Source: Podarcis bocagei (lineage: Eukaryota). Taken from it: 64,000 bases of DNA. Of this stretch, positions 11,311 through 32,759 are shown piece by piece. The position numbers and the translations under genes are program-made. Under the pieces are notes generated by a model. It worked only from the letters and a program-made list of their open reading frames with translations, was not told where the DNA came from and did no database searches. The stretch is from NCBI GenBank assembly GCA_964188305.1, contig OZ076889.1; one strand, given 5' to 3'. The stretch's first letter is position 1. The number at the start of each line of letters is the position of its first letter.

Positions 11311-11620
11311 ATGAGCAGATTGCTGGTGGGAGTGACCCTGGAGAGGATCTGCAAAGCTGTGCTGCTCTTATGTTTACTGCACTTCCTCATCATCATGATC
11401 CTCTACTTTGATGTCTACGCCCAGCGCCTGGACTTTTTCAGCCGCTTCAATATGCGCAACTCCTCCCGCACTCTGCCCTACGTCAACGTCTCTCGGCCTA
11501 ACGGGACCGCTGGGCCTCTGGGCCCTGAGCTCCTGGCCCCGAGTGTGAAGTCCGTCAGTATGAACAGCACTGTCACCGAGAAGCCCTTACCACCTTGCCC
11601 AGAGATGCCTCCTGGCCTAG
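11311..11620 (+). CDS. B4GALT2: Beta-1,4-galactosyltransferase 2, coding exon 1
   Basis: MSRLLVGVTLERICKAVLLLCLLHFLIIMILYFDVYAQRLDFFSRF...PCPEMPPGL; donor gtaag at 11621. Confidence 0.96.
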
Positions 11621-12653
11621 GTAAGATTACAGATGAGCTCTGTCTGCCTCATGCCGTGTCCTACAGAAGGCCCTTTAGTGGGGAAACTGTATTGCAGTTA
11701 TTGGGTTTATTTGTGCCCTGCTTGCCACCTGCTGTTTCCCTGTCAATGCAAATATGTCAAGTGGCTTTGGCTCCTGATAATAGGAACTAGAAGATCTAGG
11801 AATCTGCAGAACAGGCATGGTATTGCAAATCATAGGCTCCAATAGCCTCCACCATTGGAGCCAATCCTGCAGTGGAAAAGCAGTTGGGAATATGTGAACA
11901 GTATTTGTTGAAAGCTGGCAAACTGAATAGTGTTCTTAGTATATTTACAGTGATCAGATAGCGGACTTATTATTTCCTTTTTTGCCATGGCAACTCCTTG
12001 TCTCTTTCCCAGCCCCACTGTACCTAGCTGGTGCCTTTCTGCAAGTGGGCTACAAGTAATTGGGGAAAGGGCTCAGCTTCTGCACAGACATGGCTTAGTA
12101 GGGGCTACAAGGGTTAGCTCCTTCTTATGCTGATCTCTTCGAATGAATGCATGAAGTAGACCAGCTTTCACTCACCTGATGCCCTCCAGATGTATTGGAC
12201 TATAACATGGCTGCTGAAACTTGTAGCGCAAAAACATCAGGAGAGCACATGGTTGGTGAAGACCAAAGTAGACCATCTCCTCACCCTAGGGGGTAAAACA
12301 TTTAAGGCATGGGGAACTTAATACCCTTATTCCTGACAGGTGGATAAAGAGTTGAAGCACAAGTTTTGGTATTGATATTTAACTGGGGCTAAAACTTTTA
12401 TTAAACAATGCAATCTGCAATGAGCAACAACCTTTCCTGTTAACTCTGAATCACTTAGCTGGGTATTCGAGTTAACTCTGCTTTGACTGTTTGCTGTCTC
12501 TATGCTTGATACATGTTTCGGTTTTTAGGTTTCTTTGCTGATTTTTTTCTGGGCAGTGCCCCGCCAACTTGGCTAGTGAAAGGGACATGAGCTGTTTGTG
12601 TAAGTCAAGAGGCCGTGGCTGATGCATAGATAATGGAGTCCTTTCTCCTGCAG

Positions 12654-12889
12654 TGGGCCGGCTCCTTATCGAGTTCAGCACTCCCATGAGCATGGAGCGG
12701 GTGCAACGGGAAAACCCAGATGTGCGGGAGGGCGGCAAGTATTCTCCCCCAGACTGTGTGCCTCGCCAGAAGGTGGCCATCCTCATTCCGTTCCGGCACC
12801 GGGAGCACCACCTCAAGTACTGGCTGCACTACCTGCACCCGATTCTACGGCGCCAGAAGGTGTCTTACAGCATCTATATAATTAACCAG
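12654..12889 (+). CDS. B4GALT2: B4GALT2 coding exon 2
   Basis: VGRLLIEF...KVAILIPFRHREHHLKYWLHYLHPILRRQKVSYSIYIINQ; AG/GT bounded, 236 nt. Confidence 0.96.
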
Positions 12890-13440
12890 GTGTGTATAAA
12901 ATGATAATGTGGGGGCAGTGGTGCAGTTGGGTCATTGAGCATTCTGGACTGAATGGTCTCATGGATATCCCCTTCAGATGGTAATGTGCATTACTTCAAA
13001 ATATGGTGTTCCAGCCCTGCTGTCCTCCAAAGCAGAAGGAGTAGGGCCTGGATATCTGACCCAAAGTTCTGTCCTAATGGCACCACTGATGTGGAAGAGA
13101 GCAAGATGGTTGGATTTAGAACATAGTGCCATCCGGTTCCCTTGAGAGGAACCTGATTAGGGAAAGTGGTATGTTAGTTTTCATTAATATATGCCTCTCT
13201 GTTCTGATTGGAAGCAAAGGCTTCCTGCTTTGTGGGGGAAGCAGAGTGTGGGCCTTACAATGCACCATGAACTTTGCACCCATGGTAAGTGTGGAATGTG
13301 ATGTAGATGCTTCTCACTTGCTTCTCGTTTAAAAAAATCAGGCCTGCTCTCTGACATGACGATAAACCCGAAATACAGTTGATGGGACTTTGCAAGATCT
13401 ATAAAGGGAGATAGAGCAGTTCACAATGAAATCTAACAAG

Positions 13441-13686
13441 AGCCAGTGTGGTGTAGTGGTTAAGAGCGGTAGACTCGTAATCTGGGGAACCGGGTTCGCG
13501 TCTCCGCTCCTCCACATGCAGCTGCTGGGTGACCTTGGGCCAGTCACACTTCTCTGAAGTCTCTCAGCCCCACTCACCTCACACAGTGTTTGTTGTGGGG
13601 GAGGAAGTGAAAGGAGATTGTTAGCTGATTTGAGACTCCTTCGGGTAGTGATAAAGCGGGATATCAAATCCAAACTCCTCCTCCTC
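13441..13686 (+). mobile_element. tRNA-derived SINE (Squam3-like)
   Basis: A/B-box head (gtggtgtagtggttaagagc...gggttcgcgtctcc), the ggtgaccttgggccagtcac core and a (CTC)n tail, flanked by short caagag repeats. Confidence 0.8.
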
Positions 13687-13778
13687 AAGAGAGAGGGCAG
13701 CCAGCTGCATCAGGTAAGAAAGAGTAAGAGGGTCATGGCAGTTGATGTGACTCCGCCCTTCATTATCTTTCCATACAG

Positions 13779-13969
13779 TTTGGTGAAGACACCTTTAACC
13801 GAGCTAAGCTGTTGAATGTGGGCTTCCTAGAAGCCCTTCGAGATGATGAGAGCTATGACTGCTTCATCTTCAGCGACGTTGACCTGGTGCCCATGGATGA
13901 CCGGAATCTCTATCGCTGTTATGACCAACCCCGGCACTTTGCTGTTGCCATGGATAAGTTTGGCTTCCG
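13779..13969 (+). CDS. B4GALT2: B4GALT2 coding exon 3 (DxD motif)
   Basis: FGEDTFNRAKLLNVGFLEALRDDESYDCFIFSDVDLVPMDDRNLYRCYDQPRHFAVAMDKFGFR; 191 nt. Confidence 0.96.
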
Positions 13970-15618
13970 GTGAGTTTGTGCACTTTGATCTTTTTTGAGA
14001 TGCCAGTGGCCCCTTGAAATTGTTCAGAGTGTCAGAGGCAAAATGGAATGAGGAATATATGACTTTATTGCACACATATGTGCTCTCTTTCTGTGTTGGC
14101 TTGGACCTTGTGGGGACCTGCAAGCTGTGAAATGTGTTTCTTATCTAGATTGCAGTACAGGAACCTCTCCCATTCTTAAGACTACCATGTCACATTTCTT
14201 CATAATTTGCAGGGTTTTTGTACTTAAAAGTGGGGATATACAACAGCTTTGGATGAATCCCCAGCCAAAGCAGGGTGCTTTGCAGGGATTCTGGGATGGT
14301 CCGAGACAAAGTGGAACCTCTTCAGGGATCCAGAGACAAAGTGGGGATTTCCCAAAGTGCCTCATGGCACCGTGACAACTCTGACAATTGTCTGCTGAAA
14401 GCAAAACTAATGTAGCTAACTTTAGTGTATAAGGAAAGCAGAAGGGGTGTGGAATGGCTGAAGTAGAAAAGTAGAACAAATGCCAGGGTAATGGGGGGGG
14501 GGAAATTCTGCTGTGACTGACAGGTCAAGCTTGTAACCAGAGGGAATGAGTTCACCTGGAGTCTTCAACCCCAGTGCTTTGTGGGGAGGAAAGGAAATCC
14601 CTTTTAGTTCTGTCCCCTGAACCCCAAGATCAACTTTAAAAGTCCCTTGTTCACAAAAATTGAACCAATTTGTCTGCCATTGGCAAGTTTCATACCTAGG
14701 GAAACTTCTTGCATGTCTGCTTTCCGAACAATTGCCCTCAAAAGACATGGGAAGTTTAAGTGGACACTTTTTACCCATCCCCAAACTGTGAAGGCTGTCC
14801 TTGTGGGAAAACCAATGAAGCTATCGTTCAGAAATTTGACAGGATTCATCTTTCTTGGAGACTCTGATGCCTGCAAATTTCATCCAATAGTGGGGGAGGG
14901 GGAAAAGTTTCCTTAGAAAAATAACCATCAAATTTCAAAGGTACCTGACAGAAAAAATCCCCACCCTGGAATTATTTGGCTGGCTGAATCTGCTGTGGAG
15001 CGGCTAATGTGCCTGCAAATTTTATCCACTGTAAAAAGGGGAAAAGGTATAGCTTAAAAAACAACAACAATCCAATAGTGAACGAGGGGAAATGAAATCT
15101 TGTTTTTCCCCAACTCAGAAGCACTTGGGACTTAGGCATGTTGTTTTCTGAAGTACTGACTCAAGGGCCAAACTGAATCTTCTGTTTGGTGCACACCCCT
15201 AATTTAAACTTTGCTGCCTCTTATATGACTAGATGAAATGCTCCAGGGAAGTCCTTGTGATACTACATTATGGAATGGGCGCTTGCAAAACCTATATGAA
15301 GGTGATGTAAACAAGCAGACAGGATCCCTACGTGAATGTTCTGTGTTGTCTATATTCTTACCTGCCAAACATGGCAAAAGGAGATGGAGGAGGTACAGTG
15401 TGTATAAAATGGAATCCTGCATTCCCGCTAAGGAGAAGGGAAATGGGAAGGATTTAGGAGAGACCTGATGCAGTGGGAGCAATGGGTTGCCATCACATGG
15501 CTGATTTGGAAACTGGGATTTAGACTGTGTCAGGTGTAGCTTGGACCACCCAGGTTCTGTGCTCCTGAACCCATTCGTGGCTTGACTGATTCCCATCTCT
15601 CCTGCTTGTCCTCTGCAG

Positions 15619-15741
15619 GCTGCCATACTCTGGCTACTTCGGAGGTGTCTCTGGCCTGAGCAAGACACAGTTTCTGAAGATCAATGGCTTCCCTAACGAG
15701 TACTGGGGCTGGGGTGGGGAAGATGACGACATCTTTAACCG
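15619..15741 (+). CDS. B4GALT2: B4GALT2 coding exon 4
   Basis: LPYSGYFGGVSGLSKTQFLKINGFPNEYWGWGGEDDDIFNR; 123 nt. Confidence 0.96.
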
Positions 15742-16150
15742 GTGCGTGAGAGGCTGGGCCAAGCCTAGCCAGAACTTGTTCTCTGCAAGTTGGTTGTAGT
15801 AGCCATGTAGTCTGTTTTTCCATGTGGTGTCTCCTGGGAATGTGCTGAGTGGCAGGGAACAGCATTCTCTTCTGGGGTGGGGTAGCTGTGCAAATGCCAG
15901 GTGGCAATATGCAACACCTGCCTTTTCTATAACAATGCTCCCAAATCTGAGAGAGGATGACATAGGCAGGTAGGTATTCCACAGCACATAACAATCAGGG
16001 CCAAATAGCAGGCCTGGGGAGCCAATACTCTGAAAGCCAGAAGGGGTTGGGGGTGCTGAGGACTGGAGGGTGAGGACTAACTCCTGCTTTATTTAGAGTT
16101 TGCCCCCGACCTGTCTGCTGATCTTTGAGCTGCACTTTTTCTTTGCACAG

Positions 16151-16255
16151 GATCTCGCTTAATGGCATGAAAGTGTCACGTCCTGATGCCCGCATTGGGC
16201 GCTACCGCATGATCAAGCACGAGCGTGACCGACACAATGAGCCCAATCCCCAGCG
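16151..16255 (+). CDS. B4GALT2: B4GALT2 coding exon 5
   Basis: ISLNGMKVSRPDARIGRYRMIKHERDRHNEPNPQR; 105 nt. Confidence 0.96.
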
Positions 16256-16441
16256 GTGAGAAAGACAATGTGCTTGCTAGCTCCCTACCTAGTCCATTGC
16301 AAGCTACATAAGGAGATGGAAAGCTCCCACAAAATTTCTGCACCATTTTCCAGGGCACATAATGGCTTTCCATCCTGATTTCCAATGGAAAATAATCTTC
16401 CAGAAGCCTCTTCCCTTTTATAGCATACTACTCTACACCTC

Positions 16442-16778
16442 GAGGGTTAAACCACAGAGCCTAGGACTTGCTGATCAGAAGGTTGGCGGTTCAAATCCCC
16501 GCGACGGGGTGAGCTCCCGTTGCTCGGTCCCTGCTCCTGCCAACCTAGCAGTTCGAAAGCACGTCAAAGTGCAAGTAGATGAATAGGTACCACTCCGGCG
16601 GGAAGGTAAACGGCGTTTCCGTGCACTGCTCTGGTTCGCCAGAAGCGACTTAGTCATGCTGGCCACATGACCCGGAAGCTGTACACTGGCTCCCTCGGCC
16701 AATAAAGCGAATGAGCGCCGCAACCCCAGCGTCAGCCACGACTGGACCTAATGGTCAGGGGTCCCTTTACCTTACCTT
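16442..16778 (+). mobile_element. Sauria SINE
   Basis: Same family as the 9801 and 26449 copies, with a 13-bp TSD tactctacacctc (16429-16441 and 16779-16791). Confidence 0.9.
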
Positions 16779-17548
16779 TACTCTACACCTCATGAGGAGA
16801 GAGGGGCCACATTTGTTTGCCTCCCTGTAGAATGACCATGAGACAGACCAAGATAGCCTACAAGTCCTTAGCCTTCCCCCAGAGAGTGTTTTCTATTACT
16901 GCGTGTGCGTTCCTCTCTTTCTGACCTACCCCCCGTTTTAATTCCACTCTCTGCCTCTTACTTCTAAGAGACACAGACATGAATCAGAGTCCCAACCATG
17001 CACCAGGTGTGTTTGGTTAAATCTATGTTCTGCTAGTTTTAGGCAAGGAAAGAGAAAGAGACTCCTGTCCTGTGCCCTACCATTTATTGTCTGGAACCAG
17101 AGAAAAGCCACAGCTGGCATGGTTTCAGGGCAATACACTAAACTGTATTTCATGAGACTCTGACATTCCACTTGAGAAGGTTGTGTGGTGGTAGTAATCA
17201 CCTATCATGAGAACTAAATGCAGTCACCATCCATGGCCCTCCAGGATCCTATGACGCCATCACACTTTGCAACCTTGCTATATCATTTGACAGGGACTGT
17301 TGTTTTACAGCTGAGCTCTGGGTGGAGAAGCTCACTCTGTTACTTGGGACTTTCAACCTGGAAGGGCTGTGCATGGTGACTGTCCGTTCATGTGTTCAGA
17401 AGACACAATTTCATTTTGGAAGTCCCACAGTGCTTTGTATGCTGGAAATCTGACATAAGAAATTGCTTTATTGTGCGTGGATAATGTCATGTAAGGCTCT
17501 ACCCAAAATCCTTCCAAGTGGCCTGAGCTGTCATTAGACTCTCTATTC

Positions 17549-17685
17549 CAGGCTTCCTCAAACTCAGCCCTACAGATGTTTTTGGCCTACAACTCCCATG
17601 ATCCCTAGCTAGCAGGACCAGTGGTCAGGGATGATGGGAATTGTAGTCTCGAAAACATCTGGAGGGCCAAGGTTGAGGAAGCCTG
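17549..17685. mobile_element. Short hAT-type MITE
   Basis: TIR caggcttcctcaa / ttgaggaagcctg with an 8-bp TSD ctctattc. Confidence 0.85.
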
Positions 17686-17787
17686 CTCTATTCCATTCAT
17701 CAAGGAATGGCTTGTAGGTTTAACTTGAATTAACCTAACTGCCTACTTTCATGTGTAAGATGAGTTTTTCTCTGGTTCTCCTGGCAG

Positions 17788-17938
17788 GTTCACCAAAATC
17801 CAGAATACCAAGGTGACCATGAAACGCGATGGCATTGGCTCGCTTCAGTACCGCCTGGTGGAGGTGGTTCGTCGTCCCATGTACACCAATGTAACCGTGG
17901 AGATTGGCCGCCCACCACCACGCCCCCCTCGGGGCTGA
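17788..17938 (+). CDS. B4GALT2: B4GALT2 last coding exon
   Basis: FTKIQNTKVTMKRDGIGSLQYRLVEVVRRPMYTNVTVEIGRPPPRPPRG*; TGA at 17936-17938. Confidence 0.96.
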
Positions 17939-19316
17939 CTCTTTGCTGCCTGGCTCTGCCCATGGCCCCATGCATGAGGAGCTGTGCGGATCCCAGCCCT
18001 GACTGGTTCAGAGGACTGTGTCCTGGCTTGGAGGAGCTGTCTGCCTCCTTTGTGGGGATGCGGGAAAGGCCAAGACTACACCTTCGCCTTGCCCCAGCCT
18101 TTGGCTGAAGCCCATCTCCTGATCACTAGTCAGTTCTCCACAGTGCCCTTCACAGGTTGGGGAGGAAGTGTGAGTGTGTCATGGTGCCTGGCGCAGCGCT
18201 TAGGGGTCCTGGGCACAGCCAAGCCCCACTCCTGGCTGGAAGGCACTGAGAGCAGAGAAACCTTGTGCAGGTTCTTGAACCTCCCTATCCTCTCCCAGAA
18301 CTTTTCACAGAGCGGCATCCCTTAAGGATCCCGGAAGTACAGTACAGGTAGTTGTTTTCCTTTCCTCTCAGTGTGCAAGAGTGCCGTTTGAGCCTTCCTT
18401 CCAGGGGGTGGCCTGGCCTTACGACAAATGCCAGCTCGCAAGGTGTCCAGGTGGTTCACTCGTGCCCAGCTGAGAAGCTCTTCCAAAGGAGAAGCTCTCA
18501 TGGGCCTGGCCACTGCCCACCTCCATTCATGGCTTGGTGCTGTCCCCCTGCTGGGCCCTGGGTGTCACTTCTGGCTCCAGTAACACAGGGGCGTTTTATA
18601 CAAAACCCTCATTAGAATACTTGAGTGCTTCCTGGGTTAGTGTGACAGGTAGCCTGTCTGTCAAGGGACAACAGGTCATTCTTTCTAGCAGTGTTTGCTC
18701 TTCTGTCTGTGAATGGGGAATATTGGTTGGGCAGTGTGTGCTTCACTTCTCAGCAAGGATGGAATCAAAATGGCATGGTTCGGCCTACTCTCTGGTGTGG
18801 GCTGGCTTCTCTTTTTTACAGGCACCGATGGGCCTATGGCCATGGCTACAGAACAGAGGAAGGTGAAGTTGGCTTCTTGCTGCCTGTCCCCTACCTCTCA
18901 CCTCCAACCCACTTACCCCATACCAACCCTCACTCACTCACCAATCAACCTTCCCGCCATCTGCCAGGCAACCTGCCGTTGACCACTCATCGTGCCCTCT
19001 TTGTCAAGCTACCATCTGCCGCCACCTGAGGCCAGGCCCCTGGGTCCGACCGTCTGCTCATGACACATGGTGGCCGTGTGCCTAATTCCTGGAGCTAGGA
19101 AGCTGCTGGTGTCCCTCATCTCTGGTTATGGTGCCTGGCAGGTAGAATCTCCTGCGCCGGTCCACTTTGGGATGGCAGCTGGGCCAGGCTTGAAGCCAGG
19201 CACGAGTGTGTTGTGCAGCCCAGGTGTTGGTGACTTTTGTACATTTGAATGTTTTGATCCCTTTTCAAGCCTATGGTGAATGCAGCACTGGTCACTACGA
19301 TCAGACTTTTGTATTC

Positions 19317-19322
19317 AATAAA
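19317..19322 (+). terminator. B4GALT2: Probable B4GALT2 poly(A) signal AATAAA
   Basis: First AATAAA I found downstream of the stop (~1.4 kb), preceded by ttttgta motifs. Confidence 0.7.
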
Positions 19323-19573
19323 GTTTCAAAACTTGGGAGACTCCTTGCCTATGGGATTCAGGTGGGGTCTGTGGATAGAGGTAACACTGCAGGTTTATGC
19401 AATCTATCTTGGCAAGGTACAAAATTAAGAATTAAATTCGTTTCCAAATGAATGGCACCTCATTGTGCTTCCCCAACAAGTTTGTTTAAAGCAGGGACTG
19501 GGTTTTCTGGCCCAGGAAACTCTGGGCGTAGTTACTCAGCCCAGAAGACAAGAGAACTCTTCTACAAGGTTCT

Positions 19574-19579
19574 TTTATT
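19574..19579 (-). terminator. Probable poly(A) signal of the Brorin-family gene
   Basis: tttatt on + (AATAAA on -), about 475 nt after the stop at 20054. Confidence 0.6.
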
Positions 19580-20053
19580 GATGCTCACACACAGAGAAAA
19601 ACTGTTAAATAGTAGCAAAAGATACTATGTTTAGTTGAAGTTGAAGCTGGAGTGGGAATGTGGTGGCGGTTGAGGGGTGATTCCCTAAATCATATGGGGA
19701 ACCTCTGGCTCTCGAGATGTGGCTAAATTATTCCTAACCATTAGCCATGCTGGCTACAGCTGATGGGAGCTGGGAGTCCAACTATATCTGAATGGCCACA
19801 GGTTGCCCACCCATCCTAAATAAAACGGGCTTTCTCATATGAGCTACTCCCCTGCGTAATAACTCTAGACATTGTCAAGGGAAAGGGGGTAGATCTGGAA
19901 AGGGGGCTGCGACTGGCAATTGCTTATGTGTATGGTTGAAGGAGTTGGGCCAGGGCTGGGTGTAAGGGCACACTAGGGATTGTCTGGATAAGCAGAAGCC
20001 TTGCAGGTGCTGAAGAATGGCTGGCCCAGGAATTGTTTGGTGTTTGGAGCAGC

Positions 20054-20238
20054 TCAGGTGTGATGTGCACCTGTAGCCCGGCATCCCCGTAGCCGCTCAC
20101 ATTTAGCTAAGCGGTTTCCTTCCCAGTAACCGGCATCCTGGCCATCATGACAGCGGCAACGGGTGCAGGGCCCCACCCATATGCTCTCCCCAGCAGGAAT
20201 TACGTGTCGCTGGCTCCCATCCACGTAGCAGTTGGGCC
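20054..20238 (-). CDS. Brorin-family VWC protein, exon 3
   Basis: GPNCYVDGSQRHVIPAGESIWVGPCTRCRCHDGQDAGYWEGNRLAKCERLRGCRATGAHHT*; acceptor ctctccacag. Confidence 0.9.
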
Positions 20239-20767
20239 CTGTGGAGAGACATGTCCATGCATTAGAGTTTGCCATTGTTTGCAGAAGTCTCATCATGACT
20301 CTTAGAAGCAGAAAGGGCAAGCAGTTTAAGAGTACATGTGTAGGTGGGGGCAACCCAGCCAGATGGGCAGGGTATAAATAATAAAATTATAATTATTATT
20401 ACTCCTTGTACCCCTATCCTCTACCGGGAGCTCACCTCATGCAGAGGTTCTGTGCTAGAGGCTGCTTTTATACCAGGAGGACATTTTTCATTTTGGGGGG
20501 ACCCCTCTTCTAACACTAGGGCTAAACACCTGCCAAATCCTTCAAGATGAGGTGGGGGCTACCAGGTGTGTCCCCATCATTTCTAAGTAGGAGGCTTCCT
20601 GTTCAGTTAAGCAAGCTTGTGTCTGGTCAGCTTGGCTCAATTCCTCTCACTTCCCTGCTCCATTAGGACAGGGGCCCTGAACAGCAAGGGAGACAAAGTT
20701 CTCTCCCCCTTCTGGACAGCTTGAAGTGGAACATTTGTCCCTTGCTGTGAAGGTGTGTCTTTCTCAC

Positions 20768-20897
20768 CATCCTCACAGGTGGGGCAGCAGTGGCCCTTCT
20801 TGTAGACTGGATTGACGCAGGGCGGAGGGGCGCAGTCTGCCACTAGGCAACGAGCGATGCCATCTAGGTCACAGGTACACTGCTCACACTCTGAGGG
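20768..20897 (-). CDS. Brorin-family VWC protein, exon 2
   Basis: PSECEQCTCDLDGIARCLVADCAPPPCVNPVYKKGHCCPTCED; acceptor tctctcacag, donor gtgaga; 130 nt. Confidence 0.92.
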
Positions 20898-22580
20898 CTG
20901 TGAGAGACAAATATTGGTCAATAGAGCAAGTAGCTTTATGTGGACAGCACACAGTTATGATGATGATGATGCAGCTCTAGAACTATTTTGCATCAGTGGT
21001 GCAGAAGCTTATTCTTTTCTGAGAATTGCATTCCCTTGGGAATCTGTTCAGAATTCCATGCCAGTGGTGTGCTGGTCCAGAGTCAAAGTGGGTAGGGCAC
21101 CTCCTCTGCTACCCTGTTTCCCTCCCCCTTTTCCTCCTAATAAAATTAGGCTGAGAGAAATAGGTTACCCATCCATCCCACACCACCATGTTGCAGAATT
21201 GATTGGATTTTGCAGTTCCAGAATGAATTAGTCATGTCTTCTGTCTGTAACTTGCAAAAAGAGATGTGCGTATGCAAGCAGGTGGGAAACTCATGCCTCA
21301 GATACTTAATTGGATGAGGCTCCTGGCTGCATCTTTGCTTACCTGTATCTGTGCTTTAAGTATCAGGGGAAGGAGTGATCACAAAAGAAATATAAGGCCC
21401 ATCATCTCCCTTTTTTTGTAATGTGTGAAGAAGCATTCCAAACTGAATGCATAGCTATGGCAGTACTGGGATTATACCATCAGATGGCACTATCAACTAA
21501 GAATTGATAGATAATGAGGGAGAAAAAGCTTCTGTCCCAATCTCCCTTGACTTTGTGTATCTTGTCAGCTCTGGCCAACTCAAGATTACTCTCAAATAAT
21601 CATGCGGCTGGTCACTGGGGAAACTGACTGGTCATAAGAAAATGTTGAATAGAGAAAACTCTGAGTGAGTGAGAGATTGTCCCCAGTAGCGCAGAACCTT
21701 CAGGGATCCCAATATGCTAAAAAGGCCCATGAATGTGTTTTGGAACCCATTACCCAATCAAGCTCCTCCTTAAAATATCCAGCAAAGGAGACTGAAGTCA
21801 TTTTCAGCACCTCACCTCTCATTCACCTTCTCACTTGCAAAACATGAGGCTAATTCTAGCCAAGCCACATGCTTTTGTTCTCTGCCCTAAGGGGAAAGTT
21901 CTAATATTCTACCTTCTGTCAAATTCCCTCCCTCCTGAACTAATAGGTTGGTTGTCTGATTTCACACCTTCAGGGTGGGTGATGATAAAGACTGGTCTCC
22001 ACTGAAGTTCAAGTGGTTGCAGATAAAAACATTGGTCACTTGCTCTAGATCACTCGTCACAATACTTTAAAATAACAAAGCTGGAAGATGACATCAACAT
22101 TTAACACCAAAAATCATATCTTAATGATATAATTGTCCATGATCATCTTTATAACTCCAGGGAAGGAGATTGCACAACTTCACTGGCAAGTTGATATCTT
22201 GTTCGTACTACAAACCTACAGTACAAAGGAAAGTCTTTACCCTTCCTAATTTCAGAACTTTTCTCTCTCTAGATCTATAGCACTTGTCTTGCTTGTAAGC
22301 AAATGCAAGATAACCTAGTTCCAGGAAGTGTTGGGAAGCAGCCCTATATTACTGTATCTACAACCCAGATGTTATGGACCTAGAGCAAAATCTGGCCATC
22401 CCTAGTAAAGAACTGAGAAGCTTTGGCTGAGCAAAGTATTTTAGGGCAAGTTAGGCCCCAGCTGAATGGTTCTGGATAATCAAAAGCTTGCTTGCTATTT
22501 TATGAAATTTTGGTTGGCCATAATAAAGTTATTATTTGGGGGGGAAATATGGCTCAATATGGCTTTGCAGAAAGCATTTA

Positions 22581-23346
22581 CCGTATTTTTCGCTCTATAG
22601 GACGCACTTTCCCCCTTCAAATATGAAGGGGAAATGTGTGTGCGTACTATGGAGCGAAGATGCCATAGCCCCGCGACCCTCTCCCGGCTGGTAGGAGCCT
22701 CTTTAGCCGCGCGCCACCTCTCCAGCCGGGAGAGCGCGCGCGGGGCTAAAGAAGCCCTCCGTGACCCTCTCCCGGCTGGAGAGGCGACGCGCTGCTATGG
22801 CAGGAGCCTCTTTAGCCACGCGTCACCTCTCCAGCCGGGAAAGTGCGCGTGGGGCTAAAGAAGCCCCGCTTACCCTCTCCCGGCTGGAGAGGTGACACGC
22901 GGCTATGGCAGGAGCCCCTTTAGCTGCGCGCCACCTCTCCAGCTGGGAGAGCGCGTGCAGGGCTAAAGAAGCCATAGAAGCTTTCCACTGCTCCCCGACC
23001 TGCTCTTTGGGGCTGGTGGTGGGCTTCCCCCTGCCAGCCCCAAAGAGCAGGTCGAAAGGAACCTGAAGCCTGGAGAGCGAGAGGGGTCGGTGGGCACCGA
23101 CCCCTCTCGCTCTCCAGGCTTCCAAGGTAGCCGCCTGAAGGCGACTGAACGCACCTTAAACGGCACCTTGTTTTAGAGGGGGGAAACAAGAGGGGGAAAA
23201 TTCTCCCCCTCGCTGCACAGCGCCTCCTGCTGCTTCGCTGAAGGGGTGCTGGGCAGAGAGGGGGAGATTTTTTTTTTCTTGTTCTCCCCCCTCTAAAACA
23301 AGGTGCGTCCTATTGTCCAGTGCGTCCTATGGTGTGAAAAGTACGG
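22581..23346. mobile_element. Non-autonomous Tc1/mariner-superfamily (Tc2-like) element with GC-rich palindromic interior
   Basis: TA-flanked TIR CCGTATTTTTCGCTCTATAGGACGCAC; highly similar to 48515-49826. Confidence 0.85.
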
Positions 23347-24275
23347 TACTTTCTGTGTACCTTTCAACAGAATTTTGTGTTTGGGTAAATGGGACAGCCA
23401 AGAGATAAGTCATCACACAATAATTTGATGTTTAGGTAACGGACAATTCACCTAGGAAGAACCCCACTGCCCATTCTTTGACTATATGTAGCAACTGGTC
23501 CTTTCTTCATCAATACACTTATTTTTTGCAAACACTCAATTCATGCTATCCAAAGAGGCATGGAGCCCAGGAATGGAGGGCTTTGATCTTCCACCTGCAG
23601 CCTCAGGGCTAGAATTTGACTCCCTTCGGCTAGTGCAGGCTTAGTGCCAAAAATACTCCTTTCCCCACCCACCCTCAATTGTCCAAGTCAGCCATGCTAG
23701 AGATTGTTTGGTCTGACTCAAGTCCTAAAATAAACTACACACATTTTTGGCAGCAACAGACAATAGCCAGAAGCAAGGTGCTGAACTGGTCAATGTCAGG
23801 CCTAAGAAATGGATGAAAATGCAATTCAGTTAGTCAAAGGATGCTCAGCTAGGTACTACAGCCAATAAAATTGCCTTCTGAATTATCAAAAAGCTTTGGT
23901 TTTATGGGACCATCTTAAGAGCACCTCCAGCTTCACAGAGCACTTTTGATTTGGTGCTTCTCACCCACTTTGGAAAAGTTTTGTTTGTATTTTCTTTTGC
24001 TTCAGCCAGTAATGAACAAACCATAAAGAGATAGCCATTCCTGCTTCCAGTCTCTTACTCTCCTGCCTAGGCCTCCCTTTCAGAACAAGATTTAAGAAAC
24101 AGAATTGACCGCTTGCGATTCTTAGACAGTGCCTTTTTCAAGAGCATTCGCTTTTTCTCCTGCTTTTGAATATCCTCACTTTGCCCATCCATCACCTATC
24201 CATCCCTGCCCACCTGGCTCTAGATTCCTTCTCATGCCATCCCCACTTTGCCTAATTCTCCTGTAAATGCCTTAC

Positions 24276-24626
24276 CTGGAAATGCTGCCCCAGCTCATAC
24301 ACTTGTCCACGGTGCTCACAGCCAACCCTTTCGCAGCGTGGGCAGCAGTCGCTGGGGTAGTGGCTGACGTGAATGCAGGCAGGTGGCAGAGCAGTGCAGT
24401 CCGTGCGGGCGCAGGCGGGCCCCTCCGCTGTGCACTCGCACTGGGTGCAGTGGTCACTGTCCAGGAAATACCACTCCCCAACGTAGTACAGGCTCCCGTT
24501 GGCATCACACGTGGTCACTGGCCCTGCCAGTCCTGGGATGGGCACCAGAGTCAGCAGCAGCAGCGCTAAGCTCAGCTGTGCCAACGGAAAGGGCATCGCT
24601 GAACTCAAGGGACAGATGCCTGGCAT
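24276..24626 (-). CDS. Brorin-family VWC protein, exon 1 (signal peptide + VWC1)
   Basis: MPGICPLSSAMPFPLAQLSLALLLLTLVPIPGLAGPVTTCDANGSLYYVGEWYFLDSDHCTQCECTAEGPACARTDC...CCPRCERVGCEHRGQVYELGQHFQ; donor gtaag. An alternative start ATG lies at 24596. Confidence 0.9.
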
Positions 24627-24629
24627 GGG

Positions 24630-25570
24630 AGTTGGCGAGAGGGAGGAGCAGAGCAGCAGCAGCAGTAGGGAAGCGAAGCGGAGGAGAGCTGGCGGGGAAA
24701 GTGGGCATCCAGTCCGCCCCAACGCCGCTCGCGGGGTCCCACCGGGAGGTTGCCTGCTGAAGCTGCGGCTAAGAACCGCCCTGGCGTGCCTCGGCCTTTG
24801 TGCAGCCGCCGCCCGGCCCGGCCCGCCCCTTCTTGCAACCCGAGCCCGCCCAGGGGCACAGCACCCCCTCCCCAACGGAGCGGGCGGGACCGGGGCGGTG
24901 GGAGGGAGCTGGCCCCCTATCTGCACCTCAGGAAAAGCCTGCTAAGACAAGTCCACTGTGCTCCCTCTCCAGACCCCTCGAACACTCATCCGGGCAGCGA
25001 AAGTTGCGTCTCCCCAGTTCCCAGTCTCCGCGGCCTCCAAAACACGCGCGGCGCTGGATCTCTCCCTCTCCCTCCCCCCCCATCTTAATCCTAGGAACAT
25101 TAATAGGCAAAGAAAGAAGTTTCTCAATATTGTACTGTTGCCAAAGCGTAAAGCCAGTGGGACCCCTCCTGGATGAAAACTGGCCGACGTGTGGCTTCTC
25201 TTTACCTCCGATTGCTTGGGTGCAAGCGCGGGCGCGCCAAGAGCTTCAACGCGCACGCTTCCTTCCCCCGGGACGCCCGTCTCCACGCTCGACCGACATC
25301 CTGTCTGCCTCGTGGGCACGGCTCCTTTAAGAGGCGAGGCTTCAGAGGAACGCGGCGGGGCGTTACCATGGAGACGGCGAGTTTATATTCCAGAGAGTTA
25401 GAGGGTGGAGGGGGCTCGGATAGGGCAAGACGCCTGGCCCTCCGCCCCTCCGCCCGGTGTCGCAGGTGAGGGCTACCGCAGAGTTATGTCCGTGAGTCCG
25501 TAGGGAGTGAGGAAGTGTGGGGAGAGTAAAAGGTCTGGGGCGGAAGTGGGCTCGGTGGGCCGAGACGTAG
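24630..25570. promoter_or_regulatory. CpG island / bidirectional promoter of the VWC gene (-) and CCDC24 (+)
   Basis: CpG-rich with GC boxes, GGAAGTG (ETS-type) sites and an X-box at 25362-25375. Candidate CCDC24 non-coding exon-1 donor CAG|GTGAGG at 25465/25466. Confidence 0.75.
25362..25375. promoter_or_regulatory. RFX X-box
   Basis: GTTACCATGGAGAC has one perfect GTTRCC half-site, an AT spacer and a variant half-site, matching the RFX palindrome. Confidence 0.7.
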
Positions 25571-26448
25571 GTGAGTTAAGCACTGGGGAGCAACTATGGG
25601 GAGGGATAATGGGCAATAGGTTACATTTGGGGCTATAAACAACTACCTGACATTCAGAAGACAAACTTCAGGGAAGTTTTTAATGTGTGACATTTTAATA
25701 TTTTTTTAATCTTTGTTGGAAGCCGTCCAGAGTGGCTGGGGAAACCCAGCCTGATGGGCGGGGTACAAATAAATAATAATAATGATTGATAATAATTACG
25801 ATTAACGGGAATTAGTGTGACTCTCGAAGTTAATGTGAGGGGATGAGTTTGGTATATGGGGAGCAAGAAAAATTATATGCTCTTATTGTCTGGTGACCCA
25901 CGTGGTAGAAAGGTGAGTGCAAGTAACAGGATTTGTAGACAGTAGTGCAACTCAGGGGAAAAGTACAGAGCACCACAAAAATGGGGTGCCTCAAATGTCC
26001 ATCTAGAGAGTGTCAGGTGATAGAGTCAGGAACAAACGACCTGTGGCAGCACCTGGGCTGGCATGGGCATGTTGTGGTCTATTGGCGCTGATGGTAGTCA
26101 CAGCGGCATCCTTATTTTCTACAACAGTTTTAGTCAGAGGGTGGTTAACCAGGCATGTACATGGCACTCGATTCTATTTTTTACTTTTACTTTCATCCTT
26201 GGTGCTCCCCCCCCCCATAAATGTGTTTAACATCAGGGCAGCAGAAGCAAATTCCATTGTATTCCTGTAATGCTAGTGCTATGACTTAAGTGAGTTTAGA
26301 ATGTGAAACTGTACATGCTCAGAGTATTTCACAACCATTTATCTATTGTGCTAATGTATCAGGAATGTAGGAGCAGTTATAAAACATGGGAATGGCTTAC
26401 CTTACAACTGACAACTGACAAATGTAATATGTGTGGCTGTCTAATGGG

Positions 26449-26821: not shown

Positions 26822-27193
26822 CTAATGGGAGAGGGGTGTAAAACCATGGATGTGGCCAGGATTTTAGTTGGGGAGGGACAAAGCTATTGAGCTTTTCTTG
26901 GGAAATCATGGGTAAAAATACCTCATAAATAGGACATTGCGGGGGGCCAGGTTTCTGTTGGGGGGCAGAACCTCAGATAATTGAATACTTTCAATGCTTT
27001 TCAATAATATTTGTGAATCTTGGGAGGGCAGCAGCCCATGTGTAAAACCATTAAGTTCAGTGTCTAAAATTACCTAGGTGCACCATTGCATGTGGCACCG
27101 AATAGTTGTGATGTGGAGCTTCTACTCACTGTCTCATTGGCACAATCTTTTTTTCCTTTAAAGCCCATTATCGTGGAGTCGGATACAGCACCC

Positions 27194-27349
27194 ATGTTGC
27201 CCTTGCCTGGTGCATCTGGGGAATCCTTGCAGTCCGTACCATCACTCTGGACAATGGTAGAGGAACAATTAGCACCCAGTGAGAGGCTTGAGGCGAAAGC
27301 TATCTTGGGTCATGGCCTTGTGGAACGGAGCTTGGAACTTCATGCTGAG
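27194..27349 (+). CDS. CCDC24: CCDC24 coding exon 1
   Basis: [52 protein letters not shown]; acceptor at 27163/27164 upstream, donor gttaag. Confidence 0.88.
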
Positions 27350-29099
27350 GTTAAGTACCGAAATACTGGATCTCCTATTCAAAATGATTCACAAAAGAGC
27401 AGAACAAACAAACAAACCAATCACCCCTCTTACTACACAATTTAGAAGTGGCTGGTGACAAAGGGATATCTGAATAAAGCATAAAATCTAGGTCTCATCA
27501 GCTAAAGAGGCAGCACTAAATTTGTAAGGGGATTTGACTGATGAAAGGGCCCGCCTTTCATGTCTATAGATTGAGTGGAGTGGACTGAGTGCTAAAATTG
27601 AGCGGCGCTAAGGGAGGGCTTATAAATTGTATTAAGCCCCCTTCCACTGAGCACTGGCCACTAGTTTTGGCATACATGCATTTTCATATAGAGTAGCATT
27701 CATGTGTGTATGGAAAAAACCTCTGGTTTGCCACTTACATCTGCTTTGAGTGCCGTTTAATTTCAGTGAAAAGAAAGCACATCTGAGAAGGCAAGTCAAG
27801 GAGGGGACAAAATATTGCAACCATCCCCTCCCTGTTTGACAAGGTCCCCATTTGCCAGCTCCCAGCTCAGCTGGTTCCTAATGCTTGGCCAGAGCCCCTA
27901 ATCCATGCTATTCCAGGCCCTTTGTTCTCCTCCAGCCATTCATGCCCTTTCTTTATTCAGCATGGTCCTGACTGCAGCTGAGAAGAACAGTAAACATCCC
28001 AGAGGCTTTTCACATGGTAATTGCCTTACCTCCTCCTGAAACCAGAAGAGCAAGCACAACACACCCTGACAAGATGGCACCTTTCTCTATCACTTCTTCA
28101 TGTTAGAGCTTTGCTTGAGATCCAGCCCCCCCCCATTGTGGCCAGTAACCCCCTCCCCAGCCTTTATGAGGTCTTTCACCTGGCTGTCTATTACATCTTC
28201 ATCACAAGCCTGATAAATGTGGCCTAGGTACTGCCTGTCTCCCTGCTGTGTTCTTGTATGTGTCTCTGCTCCCCTCCCCAATTGGATATCTGAGAGGCCG
28301 CCCAGGGAAGCAGCTGTACCATAACGTTCCTCTTGTGGATGTGTGGGGCCAGAAAGGGATTTCTGGCGCTCGCTTGCCTTACAAATATCCTGCAGATATT
28401 TTTGCGGCATGACCTTGACTTTCCTCATGGGGGGAGGGAGAGAATGATTGTGGGTGGGCTGTCTGCAGCTTTGCACCTTTTATGGAGTGTGCAGACGGCA
28501 ACAATGCAGTGCCCTCTTGCCAGCTACATTGGAATGACAGTGTTCTGGCTGGTGTTCTTATCTTCTGCAGGCAACTTTGCCCACTTTCTGCAAAAGGGTT
28601 TTTTTTTAATCCTAAAAACTTCACTCTTAATTCTAAAATACTCTTCACATAAACTAATAGCCTCATAGTCTGTTCCAAGTCTTACGGCGGATGCAACGTT
28701 TTACTGAATTCAGTGTTCTCTCACACACATTTATCACATTTGAAGCATCTTTTATTTCCTTGATGCGTGACATACTTCTGAAAAGTTGTCAGTTCCCTTT
28801 ATGAAATGTAATTGTCTACCATCAGGTGAGTAACTAAACCATGGCTAGGTATTGATTTTCTTTTCTTGCAGGCAGGCACCTGGCTTGATTTCCAGGTGTG
28901 CAGAATAGCAATACTGGGAATGGGAGTGCAACTTGTATTTTTAGGTTGTGTCAGTGCTTCATCATTTGGGGAGGTGGAGGGTGGGGGAAAGATTACTTTG
29001 AGAAAGTTTCTGCAGTTTGTTCCAATGTGCACATGTGTGAATTTCTGCATGTGTTAATGCACTGTCCCTAATGCAGTCCAACCCCTTCCCTATTTACAG

Positions 29100-29284
29100 G
29101 TGCGGACACTGTTGGAATTCCATCAGGAGTTGCAGTCAGGCCGCCTTGGAGTGGAGCAAAGCCCACTGCAAGCGGATGACAGCTGGGCCTTGCTGGCAGC
29201 TCCCCCCAACCTCAAGGAGCTGGTGAGGGAGGAGATCCGCCTTCTTCTAATTGGCCTACAGCAGAAGGCATCGCAGGAGGGCAG
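29100..29284 (+). CDS. CCDC24: CCDC24 coding exon 2
   Basis: VRTLLEFHQELQS...LLAAPPNLKELVREEIRLLLIGLQQKASQEGR; 185 nt. Confidence 0.9.
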
Positions 29285-30887
29285 GTACTGGAGATTGGAA
29301 GAGAAGGGACTTGAGAGAATTAAGGGCTGAGTTAAGGGGGAGCAGGTAGTAGGGATAGAAGAAAAGCAAGCAGACTATATTAAGACCTGAAGCCTATTTG
29401 ATATAAGAATGAGCCCATTAGTTTCCAACTGATGTGCCTGGTGGTATTTATGTGTGCGGAATGGGTGAGTTTTACATCATCTTTTGGCCAAAGCAGTCTA
29501 GATTGAGGAAGCCATAACTATTTGTTACGAGAGGCTTAGAGTTTCATGGGACAAATCAGTTAGGAGGCTAGACAATAACTTGATTGTCTCTCTTAACAAG
29601 AACAGGATGGGGGAAACCTCTGATTCCACTCAGATATAAATAAGTCCAGTGCCACCTAGCGACTAAACTATATATTTACACTATTGACACAGGATTCTTT
29701 CTCCCTTTGCTTTTTAAGGGTGACTGTTCCAGAAATGCTTATTAGGAAATATCAGCCCCAATGCAATTTAATTGGCAGTTCCAGTATAGTTTCAACATGA
29801 TTGCCACTCAGATGGCCAATGTCCAGCAAAAATAACCTGTACCAAACACATGTTTGCACCGTACACCTCCATCTGTAACTTGCGCTCCCCATTCAAGTGC
29901 AGCTTGTCAGTTTGTGTGTCTCTCTAGTTTTTTTTATCTGTAGAATTAATTCTAGCCTTACATTCCCATTCTTTGGGTCTCAATCATATAGCCTTTGTCA
30001 TTTCCACATAGCTTCCTTACATCATGCAGGAATCACATTGCTGAGCGCCTCTATCAAGAATGCCAGTCCTGCTAGTGCATTTGTTTTTTATGGTGTGTTC
30101 AGTCCATAGCCTGAGGCTGGGATTATGTCTCACCTCCAAGTTCAAAGTGAGCATTCATCCGAGTGAGCACTGGGATCAGCACCTGCTGGAACCCTTGCCT
30201 GAGGATTTGCTCCCTGCCTTAGCCCTGTGTAACCAATGAATAGCTCAGTGAAGGCACGGATTAGAACAGGCTGGCTAGTAAGGGATAAGCTCTCAAACTC
30301 CTCATGCTGGAGTTGTTTGTACCATGTTGCCCTATCGGAGAATCCCTTCACACCCTTCAAACCTTTCTACTATCTTTCAGTCACAACCTGAAATTCTGCA
30401 TTTGTTACTTACTTTCAAATAGCTCCCCTCTTGTTGAATTGACATGAGCACAGGTCATGGCTCCCTGTGTGCTGCCTAGAACTGGGTCCAATGAATGGCC
30501 TGAGGGCTGCATGTAGCCCATAAGGCCTGTTTTGTTGGCCCTGGGCAACATTTGACACCCTCCCGAGCCCTCATGCTGCCTTCCCAAAGCCAGATAAGCA
30601 AGGCACTAGGATTGGCGAAGGAGGTGTAAAGGATCTGGCAGGGTCCTAGAGTCCTCCTGTCTCCTGCCCAAAGCCTAATTGCTGCTTCCCTGGAGTGCTC
30701 TAGGACTCTCCTAAAGCCTGTTGTCTACTTAGCTGGCTTTGGGAAGGCAGGGCAAGGACTGGGGGGTGGCATCAAATTTTTGCCTCAGTCTCCCCACTGC
30801 ACAATACAGTATGTGTTCTCTTGGTTCTGTGTCAAACTACTTTTGTGGTCTACTTGGTATGGAAAATTGGACCTCACTGGGCTCTTT

Positions 30888-31862
30888 TTTTATATAAATT
30901 TTTTTATTGGTTTTACAAAATTTTTATAAACAATACAAACAAATAAAAAGACAAACAAACATGTATAATTTCATAACCTTTTTTTTCATATCCCTCACTT
31001 CTCGGACTCCCCCAAACCTCCCCTTTCTACATCCCAATTTCCAAAATTATTTCAGCAAATCCTAACCAATTTTATCAAATATATTTCTTCTTATTCTTTT
31101 CTTTTACTTAATCTTTTGTCGCTGTAATCTCCTTTTCTTTCTCAAACCCTCGACATTTTAGCATTCATCAATTTTATAATAGTTCTTAAGATAAATTTTA
31201 AATTTCTTCCAATCTTCTTCCGCCGTCTCTTTCCCCTGATCACGGATTCTGCCAGTCATTTCGGCCAATGTCATATAGTCCATCACCTTCATCTGCCACT
31301 CTTCCAGGGTGGGTAGGTCTTGTGTCTTCCAATACTTTGCCATAAGTATTCTTGCTGCTGTCGTAACATACATAAAAAAAATTCTGTCTTTCTTTGATAC
31401 CAATTGGCCGACAATGCCCAGGAGAAAGGCCTCTGGTTTCTTAGGGAAGGTACATCTAAGTACCTTTTTCATTTCATTATATATCATCTCCCAGAAAGCC
31501 TTAATCTTTGGGCACGTCCACCAAAGGTGATAGAAAGTACCTTCAGTTTCTTTACACTTCCAGCACTTATTGTCGGGCAAATGATAGATTTTTGCAAGCT
31601 TGACTGGGGTCATGTACCACCTGTAAATCATTTTCATAATATTTTCCTTACATGCCGTAAATTTTATCCCGGTGTTCCACAACCATTCCCAGTCAGCAAA
31701 CATAATGTTATGACCAATGTCCTGTGCCCACTTAATCATAGCTGATTTAACTGTTTCATCTTGTGTATTCCATTTCAGCAACAAGTTATACATTCTTGAC
31801 AAATTCTTAGTATTGGGTTCTAACAGTTCAGTTTCTAATTTTGATTTCTCCACCTGGAAGCC
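30888..31862 (-). mobile_element. 5'-truncated L1-clade LINE (ORF2 C-terminus, 3'UTR, poly(A))
   Basis: ORF 31158-31853(-) has the CWKC...H..W.C zinc-knuckle motif and an A-rich tail. TSD acctcactgggctcttt (30871-30887 and 31863-31879). Confidence 0.92.
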
Positions 31863-32025
31863 ACCTCACTGGGCTCTTTAGTCCAGCTTGTTTTCCCTTT
31901 TAGGCTTCTATTCATTCCAGCTACTGGGTGGTTTTGTGACCCAGCACTGCCACCAACTGGTCTTCTCTTGTCCTTGTCCTGGAGATGAACAATTACCTTA
32001 TGGGTGTACATTTTCTGCTTCACAG

Positions 32026-32133
32026 GAACCAAGATTGTGCCATCGCTAAATACAGCCCTCATGTGGTCACCTTTGCACTGAAGGCAAATGCTGGCAATAG
32101 TCAGTCTTCATCTGGGAGCAGTGCCCTAATCAG
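32026..32133 (+). CDS. CCDC24: CCDC24 coding exon 3
   Basis: NQDCAIAKYSPHVVTFALKANAGNSQSSSGSSALIR; 108 nt, phase 2-2. Confidence 0.88.
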
Positions 32134-32759
32134 GTAAGACTGAAGGAAGCTGCAGCCTCCACACAATGAACTTCTGGGCTGTGACTTGTTCTTACCCGGA
32201 ACACCATGAACTGTATCACCACAGGAGGTCTCAGAATCCAGGACTGATTTTGTCTGTAGGAAGCCTAACACCACAGAGTGCCATATGCCATAACTTAGCA
32301 ACCTAGCAGCGATTGGTTCTTTTTGCATCTATGGGCAGTTTGGGACTGATCACTATTATCTCATTTGATCCTCATACACGTTCCAGGACTGGGGACTTGC
32401 AATGAGTTGGCCTCCGTGCTGGTTTCAGTCCCATTGTGGCATTAAGCTAGAAATGTGTTTGTATTATTTATATAGATATGCAAATTATGCATATGTAGAA
32501 TTAGCAGTGGTGTGCCCACTTAAATTATAAGTCTCCATTTTGGATAGAACCTTAATGTTAAGTCAGAGAGGCTGTGAAATTACAGACTCAGCCAGCAAAG
32601 ATGGGGCAATATCAATGGGGTGGGGTGGGGAGACTCACTGAGCAAGCAGAAATCTTTGTGCAGGGCTTCCACTAACAGAGATGTAGGTGAATCCCACCCC
32701 TAGTATGTTTTCCTTTTATATCTAGTTGAAGAAACCAAGAGCAGGTTGGTATGCGGAGG

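Follow-up and report, generated by a model that had tools for sequence, protein, structure and literature searches.

Podarcis bocagei carries, next to CCDC24, an intact Brorin/VWC2L-family gene orthologous to the unnamed vertebrate gene zgc:113531

The catalogue of extracellular antagonists of bone morphogenetic proteins (BMPs) has been drawn almost entirely from mouse and human. One of them, Brorin, the product of VWC2 (mouse Q8C8N3), is a proven secreted BMP antagonist of about 325 amino acids (aa) with a long N-terminal region. It blocks BMP2/BMP6 Smad phosphorylation in vitro and dorsalises zebrafish embryos, its coding region contains two introns, and its gene is linked to ikzf1 (PMC5407822). 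VWC2L, or Brorin-like (human B2RUY7, zebrafish B0UZC8), is likewise secreted and is about 220 aa long, with two von Willebrand factor type C (VWC) modules and a 6-Cys module. Single VWC modules of the chordin family have solved structures, such as the Crossveinless-2/BMPER VWC1-BMP-2 complex (PDB 3bk3), collagen IIA vWC (5nir), and CCN3 vWC (5nb8). Here we describe a gene of the Brorin/VWC2L family on the minus strand, at positions 24626-20054, of a 64,000-nucleotide (nt) stretch of Podarcis bocagei DNA (contig OZ076889.1), which is referred to as the window. The analyses indicate with good confidence that this is an intact three-exon gene for a secreted protein, orthologous to zgc:113531 of fishes, that it belongs to an early-branching clade of its own (clade Z) apparently lost in mammals, birds, and crocodilians, and that the protein would act as a BMP modulator, as its relatives suggest.

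The gene resembles VWC2L closely in its overall design. Splicing of the three exons, at 24626-24276 (351 nt), 20897-20768 (130 nt), and 20238-20054 (185 nt), yields a 666-nt frame without an internal stop that encodes 221 aa and ends in TGA (20056-20054). Exon 1, which ends in phase 0, encodes the signal peptide, an NGS sequon (residues 43-45), the entire VWC module 1, and the start of module 2; exon 2, which ends in phase 1, encodes the remainder of module 2; and exon 3 encodes the 6-Cys C-terminal module with a DAGYWEGNR loop. Both intron 1 (20898-24275, 3378 nt) and intron 2 (20239-20767, 529 nt) are of the GT..AG type, with polypyrimidine tracts ahead of the AG. The signal peptide is predicted from a hydrophobic, leucine-rich core preceding the sequence GLAG/P, and the mature protein would begin at this predicted cleavage site, 4 residues ahead of its first Cys. 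In Crossveinless-2, VWC1 likewise begins a few residues past the signal-peptide cleavage site. There are 27 Cys residues in total, one at residue 5 ahead of the signal-peptide core and 26 in the mature part, where they are arranged as 10+10+6. The translations of exons 1, 2, and 3 matched, in this order, the Pfam models VWC2L_1st (E value of 1.8e-14, 53.8 bits), VWC2L_2nd (1.4e-9, 38.5 bits), and VWC2L_C (6.8e-17, 61.6 bits), for which the gathering cut-off is 27 bits. The same three models describe VWC2L. Together with the signal peptide, the 10+10+6 Cys pattern, and the two coding introns at conserved positions, they place the protein in the Brorin/VWC2L family. An earlier sequence-only reading had proposed the three GT-AG exons, the 221-aa product, the signal peptide, the sequon, and the Cys pattern, and the splicing, Cys count, and Pfam results confirmed all of these. 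Two in-frame ATGs occur in the region 24596-24626, at codon 1 (24626) and at codon 11. The true start is uncertain because the snake orthologues begin where the second ATG lies; the choice has no effect on the mature protein. A single upstream ATG, out of frame, precedes the start by 82 nt.

Transcripts agreed with this gene structure. Assembler contigs from four RNA runs, which belonged to four studies and two organisms, were placed on 19300-24900 and were 95-99% like the window. The joint 20897/24276, which skips 3378 nt (CT..AC on the plus strand, that is, GT..AG on the minus strand), was found in contigs of all four runs, and so was the joint from 20237/8 to 20767/8, which skips 529 nt with the cut placed at +1. 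Thus, both junctions predicted by the sequence-only reading, 24276/20897 and 20768/20238, exist in RNA. Word depth was far higher over the exons than over the introns (1351 compared to about 19 in run X5), and 7 of the 11 listed coding differences between transcripts and window were synonymous. At the 3' end, 19560 or 19591 is the first position covered by the contigs of three runs, in agreement with an AATAAA located at 19579-19574 on the coding strand. The poly(A) signal claimed earlier is present, and the 3' untranslated region (UTR) spans 19560-20053. The probable 5' UTR spans 24627-24903. Its upper end is uncertain: a 651-nt contig of run X1 stops near 24903, and a 1411-nt contig of run X5 extends beyond this point and may be merged with the divergent neighbor.

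The coding sequence is also under constraint. Coding sequences of four orthologues (agamid, boa, turtle, and pike) were recovered from their loci, and each has three exons with an exon 2 of 130 nt. Among the three squamates, the pairwise ratio of nonsynonymous to synonymous substitution rates (dN/dS) was 0.12-0.17 at a dS of about 0.76, and it was lower still in comparisons with pike. In an alignment of 21 orthologues, the 26 mature Cys residues were invariant or nearly so, the NGS sequon was at least 90% conserved, and the DAGYWEGNR loop was likewise conserved. The gene is intact, transcribed, and under purifying selection. The orthologue of the turtle Emys orbicularis (P0064, L002:10001-10315) stands apart. 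It keeps all of its Cys residues, its VWC module 1 is strongly divergent and rich in Arg, Ala, Pro, and Gly, the NGS sequon is lost, and its odd amino acid composition was flagged in the tree analysis. GC-biased or relaxed evolution is a possible cause in this lineage, the one among those sampled that is nearest the archosaurs, which seem to lack the gene. In two database proteins of the clade, P0010 (362 aa) and P0070 (354 aa), a long unrelated segment is inserted precisely where exons 1 and 2 meet, and one of these segments resembles a transposase fragment. Both are probably erroneous gene models in which intronic repeats were read through.

Orthologues of the gene, with 60-94% identity, range from sharks to squamates. 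A word-indexed protein search with exon 1 of the window as the query, made by way of its stop-free upstream extension and limited to that region, returned 65 relatives with 58-94% identity. They came from geckos, agamids, boas, colubrids, elapids, a turtle, frogs, caecilians, lungfish, many teleosts, gar, sharks, and rays, and some of the teleost matches were labeled zgc:113531. Exons 2 and 3 of the turtle protein P0064 were used as a second query because turtle module 1 is divergent and archosaur copies might escape the first search. This recovered the same taxa plus further turtles and sturgeons. Identity between shark and lizard orthologues was 60-70%. When 1.84 billion cluster representatives were searched exhaustively with HMMER, the query being the orthologue of the agamid Phrynocephalus (P0005), 556 proteins were returned at an E value of ≤0.001; the short relatives beyond this clade were just 37-45% identical. 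Cluster look-ups identified the distant relatives as Brorin, VWC2L, a fish protein of the si:dkey-283b1.7 type (D-type), lamprey and hagfish proteins, and "brorin-like" proteins of Ciona and molluscs.

The genomic neighborhood is shared as well. Three loci, those of Phrynocephalus (L001), of the boa Candoia (L004), and of the pike Esox (L003), show the order CCDC24 (minus), the gene (plus), and a galactosyltransferase gene with Glyco_transf_7N/7C domains (minus); the window, when read along its minus strand, has the same order. At the Emys locus (L002), the galactosyltransferase gene lies on the same side, and no CCDC24 gene was called within the 10-kb flank. The window was collinear with the Phrynocephalus and Emys loci by tblastx. 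Judging from these loci, the position of the gene, with CCDC24 on one side and a B4GALT gene on the other, appears to go back at least to the ancestor of bony vertebrates. The comparison of this interval in fish, which the sequence-only reading had suggested, thus gave the same order in pike as in the window. The fish gene zgc:113531 and the reptile, amphibian, and shark LOC genes annotated as "VWC2L-like" form one clade with the window protein, have the same three exons, and, in pike, have the same neighbors. There is no difference in kind between them; the names are automatic annotations in place of a proper name. The window gene represents, in squamates, the vertebrate gene that has no name of its own and is called zgc:113531 in fishes. 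The earlier reading had called it an ancient paralogue kept in squamates. Its antiquity is supported by the synteny with agamid, boa, and pike, and retention extends well beyond squamates, to turtles, amphibians, lungfish, and ray-finned and cartilaginous fishes.

A maximum-likelihood tree of 46 proteins (LG+C20+F+G4) placed the window protein inside clade Z, which has 15 members and a support of 99/97. The sister of clade Z was a clade with a support of 98/96 that contained VWC2L, Brorin with the D-type, and three lamprey-hagfish pairs; Ciona and two molluscs, on very long branches, fell outside both vertebrate clades. Approximately unbiased (AU) tests rejected the grouping of clade Z with VWC2L (P = 0.017), with VWC2 (P = 0.038), and with the D-type (P = 0.017). 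This agrees with the earlier proposal of a clade separate from VWC2 and VWC2L. The description of the gene as a third paralogue did not hold, since the tree points to four family clades in gnathostomes.

Further comparison with the characterized relatives showed several differences. First, identity to VWC2L is 32-37% and to Brorin 35-36%, even though both share the core architecture with the window protein and Brorin also has two coding introns. Second, VWC2L has an acidic N-terminal segment, a DYRGKGC motif, and a module 1 with CxCxC and a loop that is shorter by 2 residues; Brorin, apart from its length, carries the same derived indels as VWC2L. Third, the proteins of clade Z have no acidic N-terminal segment, a canonical module 1, and a conserved C-terminal loop of their own. 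This loop in the last module had been reported as an insert, which is true relative to tetrapod VWC2L, where the difference is large; relative to Brorin and most family members, it is only about 2 residues longer. A separate 3-residue insert follows GPNCY. Finally, the loci differ, VWC2L being located elsewhere and coexisting with this gene in squamates.

The form of module 1 divides the family cleanly. In clade Z, Ciona, and the molluscs, module 1 has the canonical CxxCxC and 9 residues ahead of the CC pair, whereas in every VWC2, VWC2L, D-type, and cyclostome protein the motif is CxCxC and the CC pair is preceded by 7 residues. In a census of every fetched protein of ≤420 aa with module 1, the spacing (2,9) was found in 83 proteins (60 of clade Z and 23 unclassified fragments or others) and the spacing (1,7) in 161 (148 and 13, respectively), with no protein crossing between the groups. 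This division stands independently of the tree. By this comparison, clade Z appears to keep the ancestral, invertebrate-type module 1. Clade Z and the D-type have their introns at the same positions and in the same phases (phase 0 after F(Q/K), phase 1 before GPNC, and an exon 2 of 130 nt). This means that the two are true duplicates of one ancestral gene and not retrocopies. The split of clade Z probably predates the VWC2/VWC2L duplication, and also the separation of these two from the D-type and from all cyclostome members sampled.

Several points weigh against this reading. The RNA contigs stem from close relatives and show the existence of a spliced mRNA, not the site of its expression. 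The root split of the tree had a support of 84/28 only, the rooting depends on very long invertebrate branches, and the P values of the AU tests are modest. The apparent loss in mammals, birds, and crocodilians is drawn from two protein-database searches through a word index. The structural model is only moderately confident, with a mean predicted local distance difference test (pLDDT) score of 70, and the suggested BMP binding follows from homology at 32-37% identity.

The structural model was an AlphaFold model of the Phrynocephalus orthologue P0005 rather than of the window protein. Its pLDDT reached 80-91 over VWC module 1, and it has a helix at residues 16-27. The best fold matches among reviewed proteins were VWC2L, which ranked first in Swiss-Prot, and Brorin (E value of about 1e-13), followed by kielin/chordin-like protein, VWCE, chordin, NELL, and BMPER. 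Among solved structures, the matches were NEL, CCN3 vWC, collagen IIA vWC, and the Crossveinless-2 VWC1-BMP-2 complex. These single-domain matches share the VWC fold and cover the modules, whereas the loose arrangement of the modules in the model keeps the global template modeling scores low, and P0005 had no sequence match to any PDB chain at an E value of ≤0.01.

By analogy with Brorin, the source of the proposed mechanism, the signal peptide would be cleaved and the protein secreted. The tandem VWC modules may then bind BMP-type ligands outside the cell, and BMP signaling would be modulated, most probably antagonized, as with Brorin and Brorin-like. Antagonism specifically is slightly favored. 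It is unlikely, though worth serious consideration, that the protein is not mainly a BMP antagonist and would act instead as a BMP enhancer, in synaptic receptor complexes, or through another receptor. For example, both promotion and inhibition of BMP signaling are possible for VWC proteins, Crossveinless-2 among them (cited in PMC5407822), and a receptor screen detected binding of VWC2L tetramers to CD36 (PMC9578707). In addition, the features peculiar to clade Z, namely, the lack of the acidic segment, the canonical module 1 beginning 4 residues past the predicted cleavage site, the insert after GPNCY, and the C-terminal loop, could alter partner specificity. The earlier reading had proposed a BMP or synaptic modulator, Brorin and Brorin-like being also found in AMPA-receptor complexes, and both roles are putative here. 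On the other side, the prior from the two characterized paralogues and the chordin family favors BMP binding.

How old clade Z is relative to the two rounds of vertebrate genome duplication (2R) was also considered. Tentatively, and at somewhat less than an even chance, clade Z could be a pre-2R lineage, older than the VWC2/VWC2L split, with a function of its own that is nonredundant with Brorin and Brorin-like and with independent losses in cyclostomes, mammals, and archosaurs. The competing explanation that clade Z is a 2R sister of VWC2, VWC2L, and the D-type, fast evolving and pulled to a basal position by long-branch effects, seems rather improbable. The stem branches are indeed long (1.22 and 1.67), the root split is weak, four gnathostome clades is the number expected from 2R, and no cyclostome or invertebrate member of clade Z was found in the searches made. 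However, all three cyclostome pairs carry both derived deletions together with VWC2, VWC2L, and the D-type, and clade Z is undeleted like Ciona and the molluscs. The gene neighborhoods also differ. The D-type adjoins an RPL23-like gene, and human RPL23 is on 17q12 near IKZF3. If this position is right, the D-type would fill a third IKZF-linked position, and VWC2, VWC2L, and the D-type would all lie in IKZF-linked paralogous regions, with clade Z in a different neighborhood.

The D-type itself, found in teleosts, bichir, and stingray (proteins P0108, P0231, P0232, P0133, and P0234), has the same architecture as clade Z. It differs in being sister to Brorin in the tree, in its derived CxCxC, and in its locus. 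In Chanos chanos (L005:10001-12356), it lies between an HMG-box gene and a Ribosomal_L14 (RPL23-like) gene. No tetrapod D-type was seen in the searches made, and no paper on si:dkey-283b1.7 was found in the literature search.

It is highly improbable that the gene is merely the squamate orthologue of VWC2L (or VWC2), relocated or fast evolving. The domain architecture and the length (221 compared to 222 aa) do match VWC2L. However, a search seeded with bird VWC2L, which recovered VWC2L of mammals, birds, turtles, fishes, and sharks and also amphibian Brorin, identified true VWC2L in the four squamates Anolis, Pantherophis, Sphaerodactylus, and Varanus, with a core 96-100% identical to that of bird VWC2L. 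Squamates thus own VWC2L besides the gene described here, which is therefore not a displaced VWC2L orthologue; the earlier reading had said that it is neither VWC2 nor VWC2L, and this was borne out. The clade Z support, the two AU rejections, and the two fixed indels argue in the same direction, and the synteny with CCDC24 and B4GALT is common to a teleost, whereas Brorin is linked to ikzf1 (PMC5407822). Membership in the VWC2L group was rejected on the tree, the AU test, and the lack of a CxCxC module 1 and of the DYRGKGC motif, and membership in the VWC2 group on the tree, the AU test, the start of the mature protein so close to Cys1, and the CCDC24/B4GALT neighbors. A squamate-specific duplicate was likewise rejected, as was a retrocopy, given the conserved introns. 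That the open frame is a remnant, in decay or without expression, as the apparent loss in entire lineages (mammals and birds) and the divergent, compositionally odd turtle module 1 might hint, can be dismissed in view of the intact frame, the retained Cys residues, the low dN/dS, and the correctly spliced transcripts, terminated at the polyadenylation site, at word depths of up to 1351 in the four RNA runs.

The absence from some lineages bears on why the gene has received little attention. In the two word-indexed protein-database searches (exon 1 and turtle exons 2 and 3), no mammal, bird, or crocodilian orthologue was found. The gene thus appears to be lost in all three groups, in agreement with the loss in mammals proposed by the sequence-only reading and extending it to birds and crocodilians. 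No paper on zgc:113531 was found in a literature search of about 8.4 million texts. The earlier guess that the gene is uncharacterized was right to this extent; it is already in databases under automatic names ("VWC2L-like" and zgc:113531) and is an uncharacterized member of a known family. A strongly conserved secreted member of this family (dN/dS of about 0.13), seemingly without a mammal or bird counterpart, has in this way escaped study. The gene is present in zebrafish and Xenopus-type models and is open to knockout. The history of the family also becomes clearer, with what appear to be four gnathostome clades and the ancestral form of module 1 in clade Z. Lineage-specific loss of ancient paralogues is common in mammals. 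For this reason, and because the gene is already in automatic annotations, the finding is solid rather than startling.

On the two sides of the gene in the window lie the neighbors described above. The sequence-only reading had named them B4GALT2 and CCDC24, and Pfam matches supported CCDC24 and a beta-1,4-galactosyltransferase gene, the latter taken to be paralogue 2. The galactosyltransferase gene (11287-18023, plus strand) is convergent with the gene and was delimited by tblastx collinearity with the Phrynocephalus and Emys loci; Glyco_transf_7N/7C matches fell on plus-strand exons at 12623-12901, 13746-13970, and 15590-15796. Its transcript seems to stop near 19361, where an RNA contig ends. 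The RNA contigs suggest that a mere 200 nt or so separate the convergent 3' ends of this transcript (19361) and of the gene (19560). Window blocks at 18079-19394 show conservation with the agamid locus and probably represent 3' UTRs.

CCDC24, part of which was seen at 27068-32134 on the plus strand, is divergent from the gene and was recognized by tblastx collinearity with Phrynocephalus CCDC24 and by a Pfam CCDC24 match (E value of 4.6e-11) at 29058-29327 on the plus strand. Between the two genes, at approximately 24400-25600, is a CpG-rich region with a GC content of 0.58-0.69 and an observed/expected CpG ratio of 0.6-1.0. The region had been claimed as the gene's own CpG island. The CpG-rich stretch is present, and because CCDC24 starts divergently just beyond it, it is probably a shared, bidirectional island or divergent promoter rather than one belonging to the gene.

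Finally, intron 1 contains a high-copy repeat at about 22578-23350, with tandem 108-nt units at 22689-22973 and inverted segments. Over this repeat, RNA contigs accumulate to word depths of 1000-5000 and show numerous loose ends and odd joints, a pattern that a transcribed interspersed repeat present elsewhere in the genome would give.

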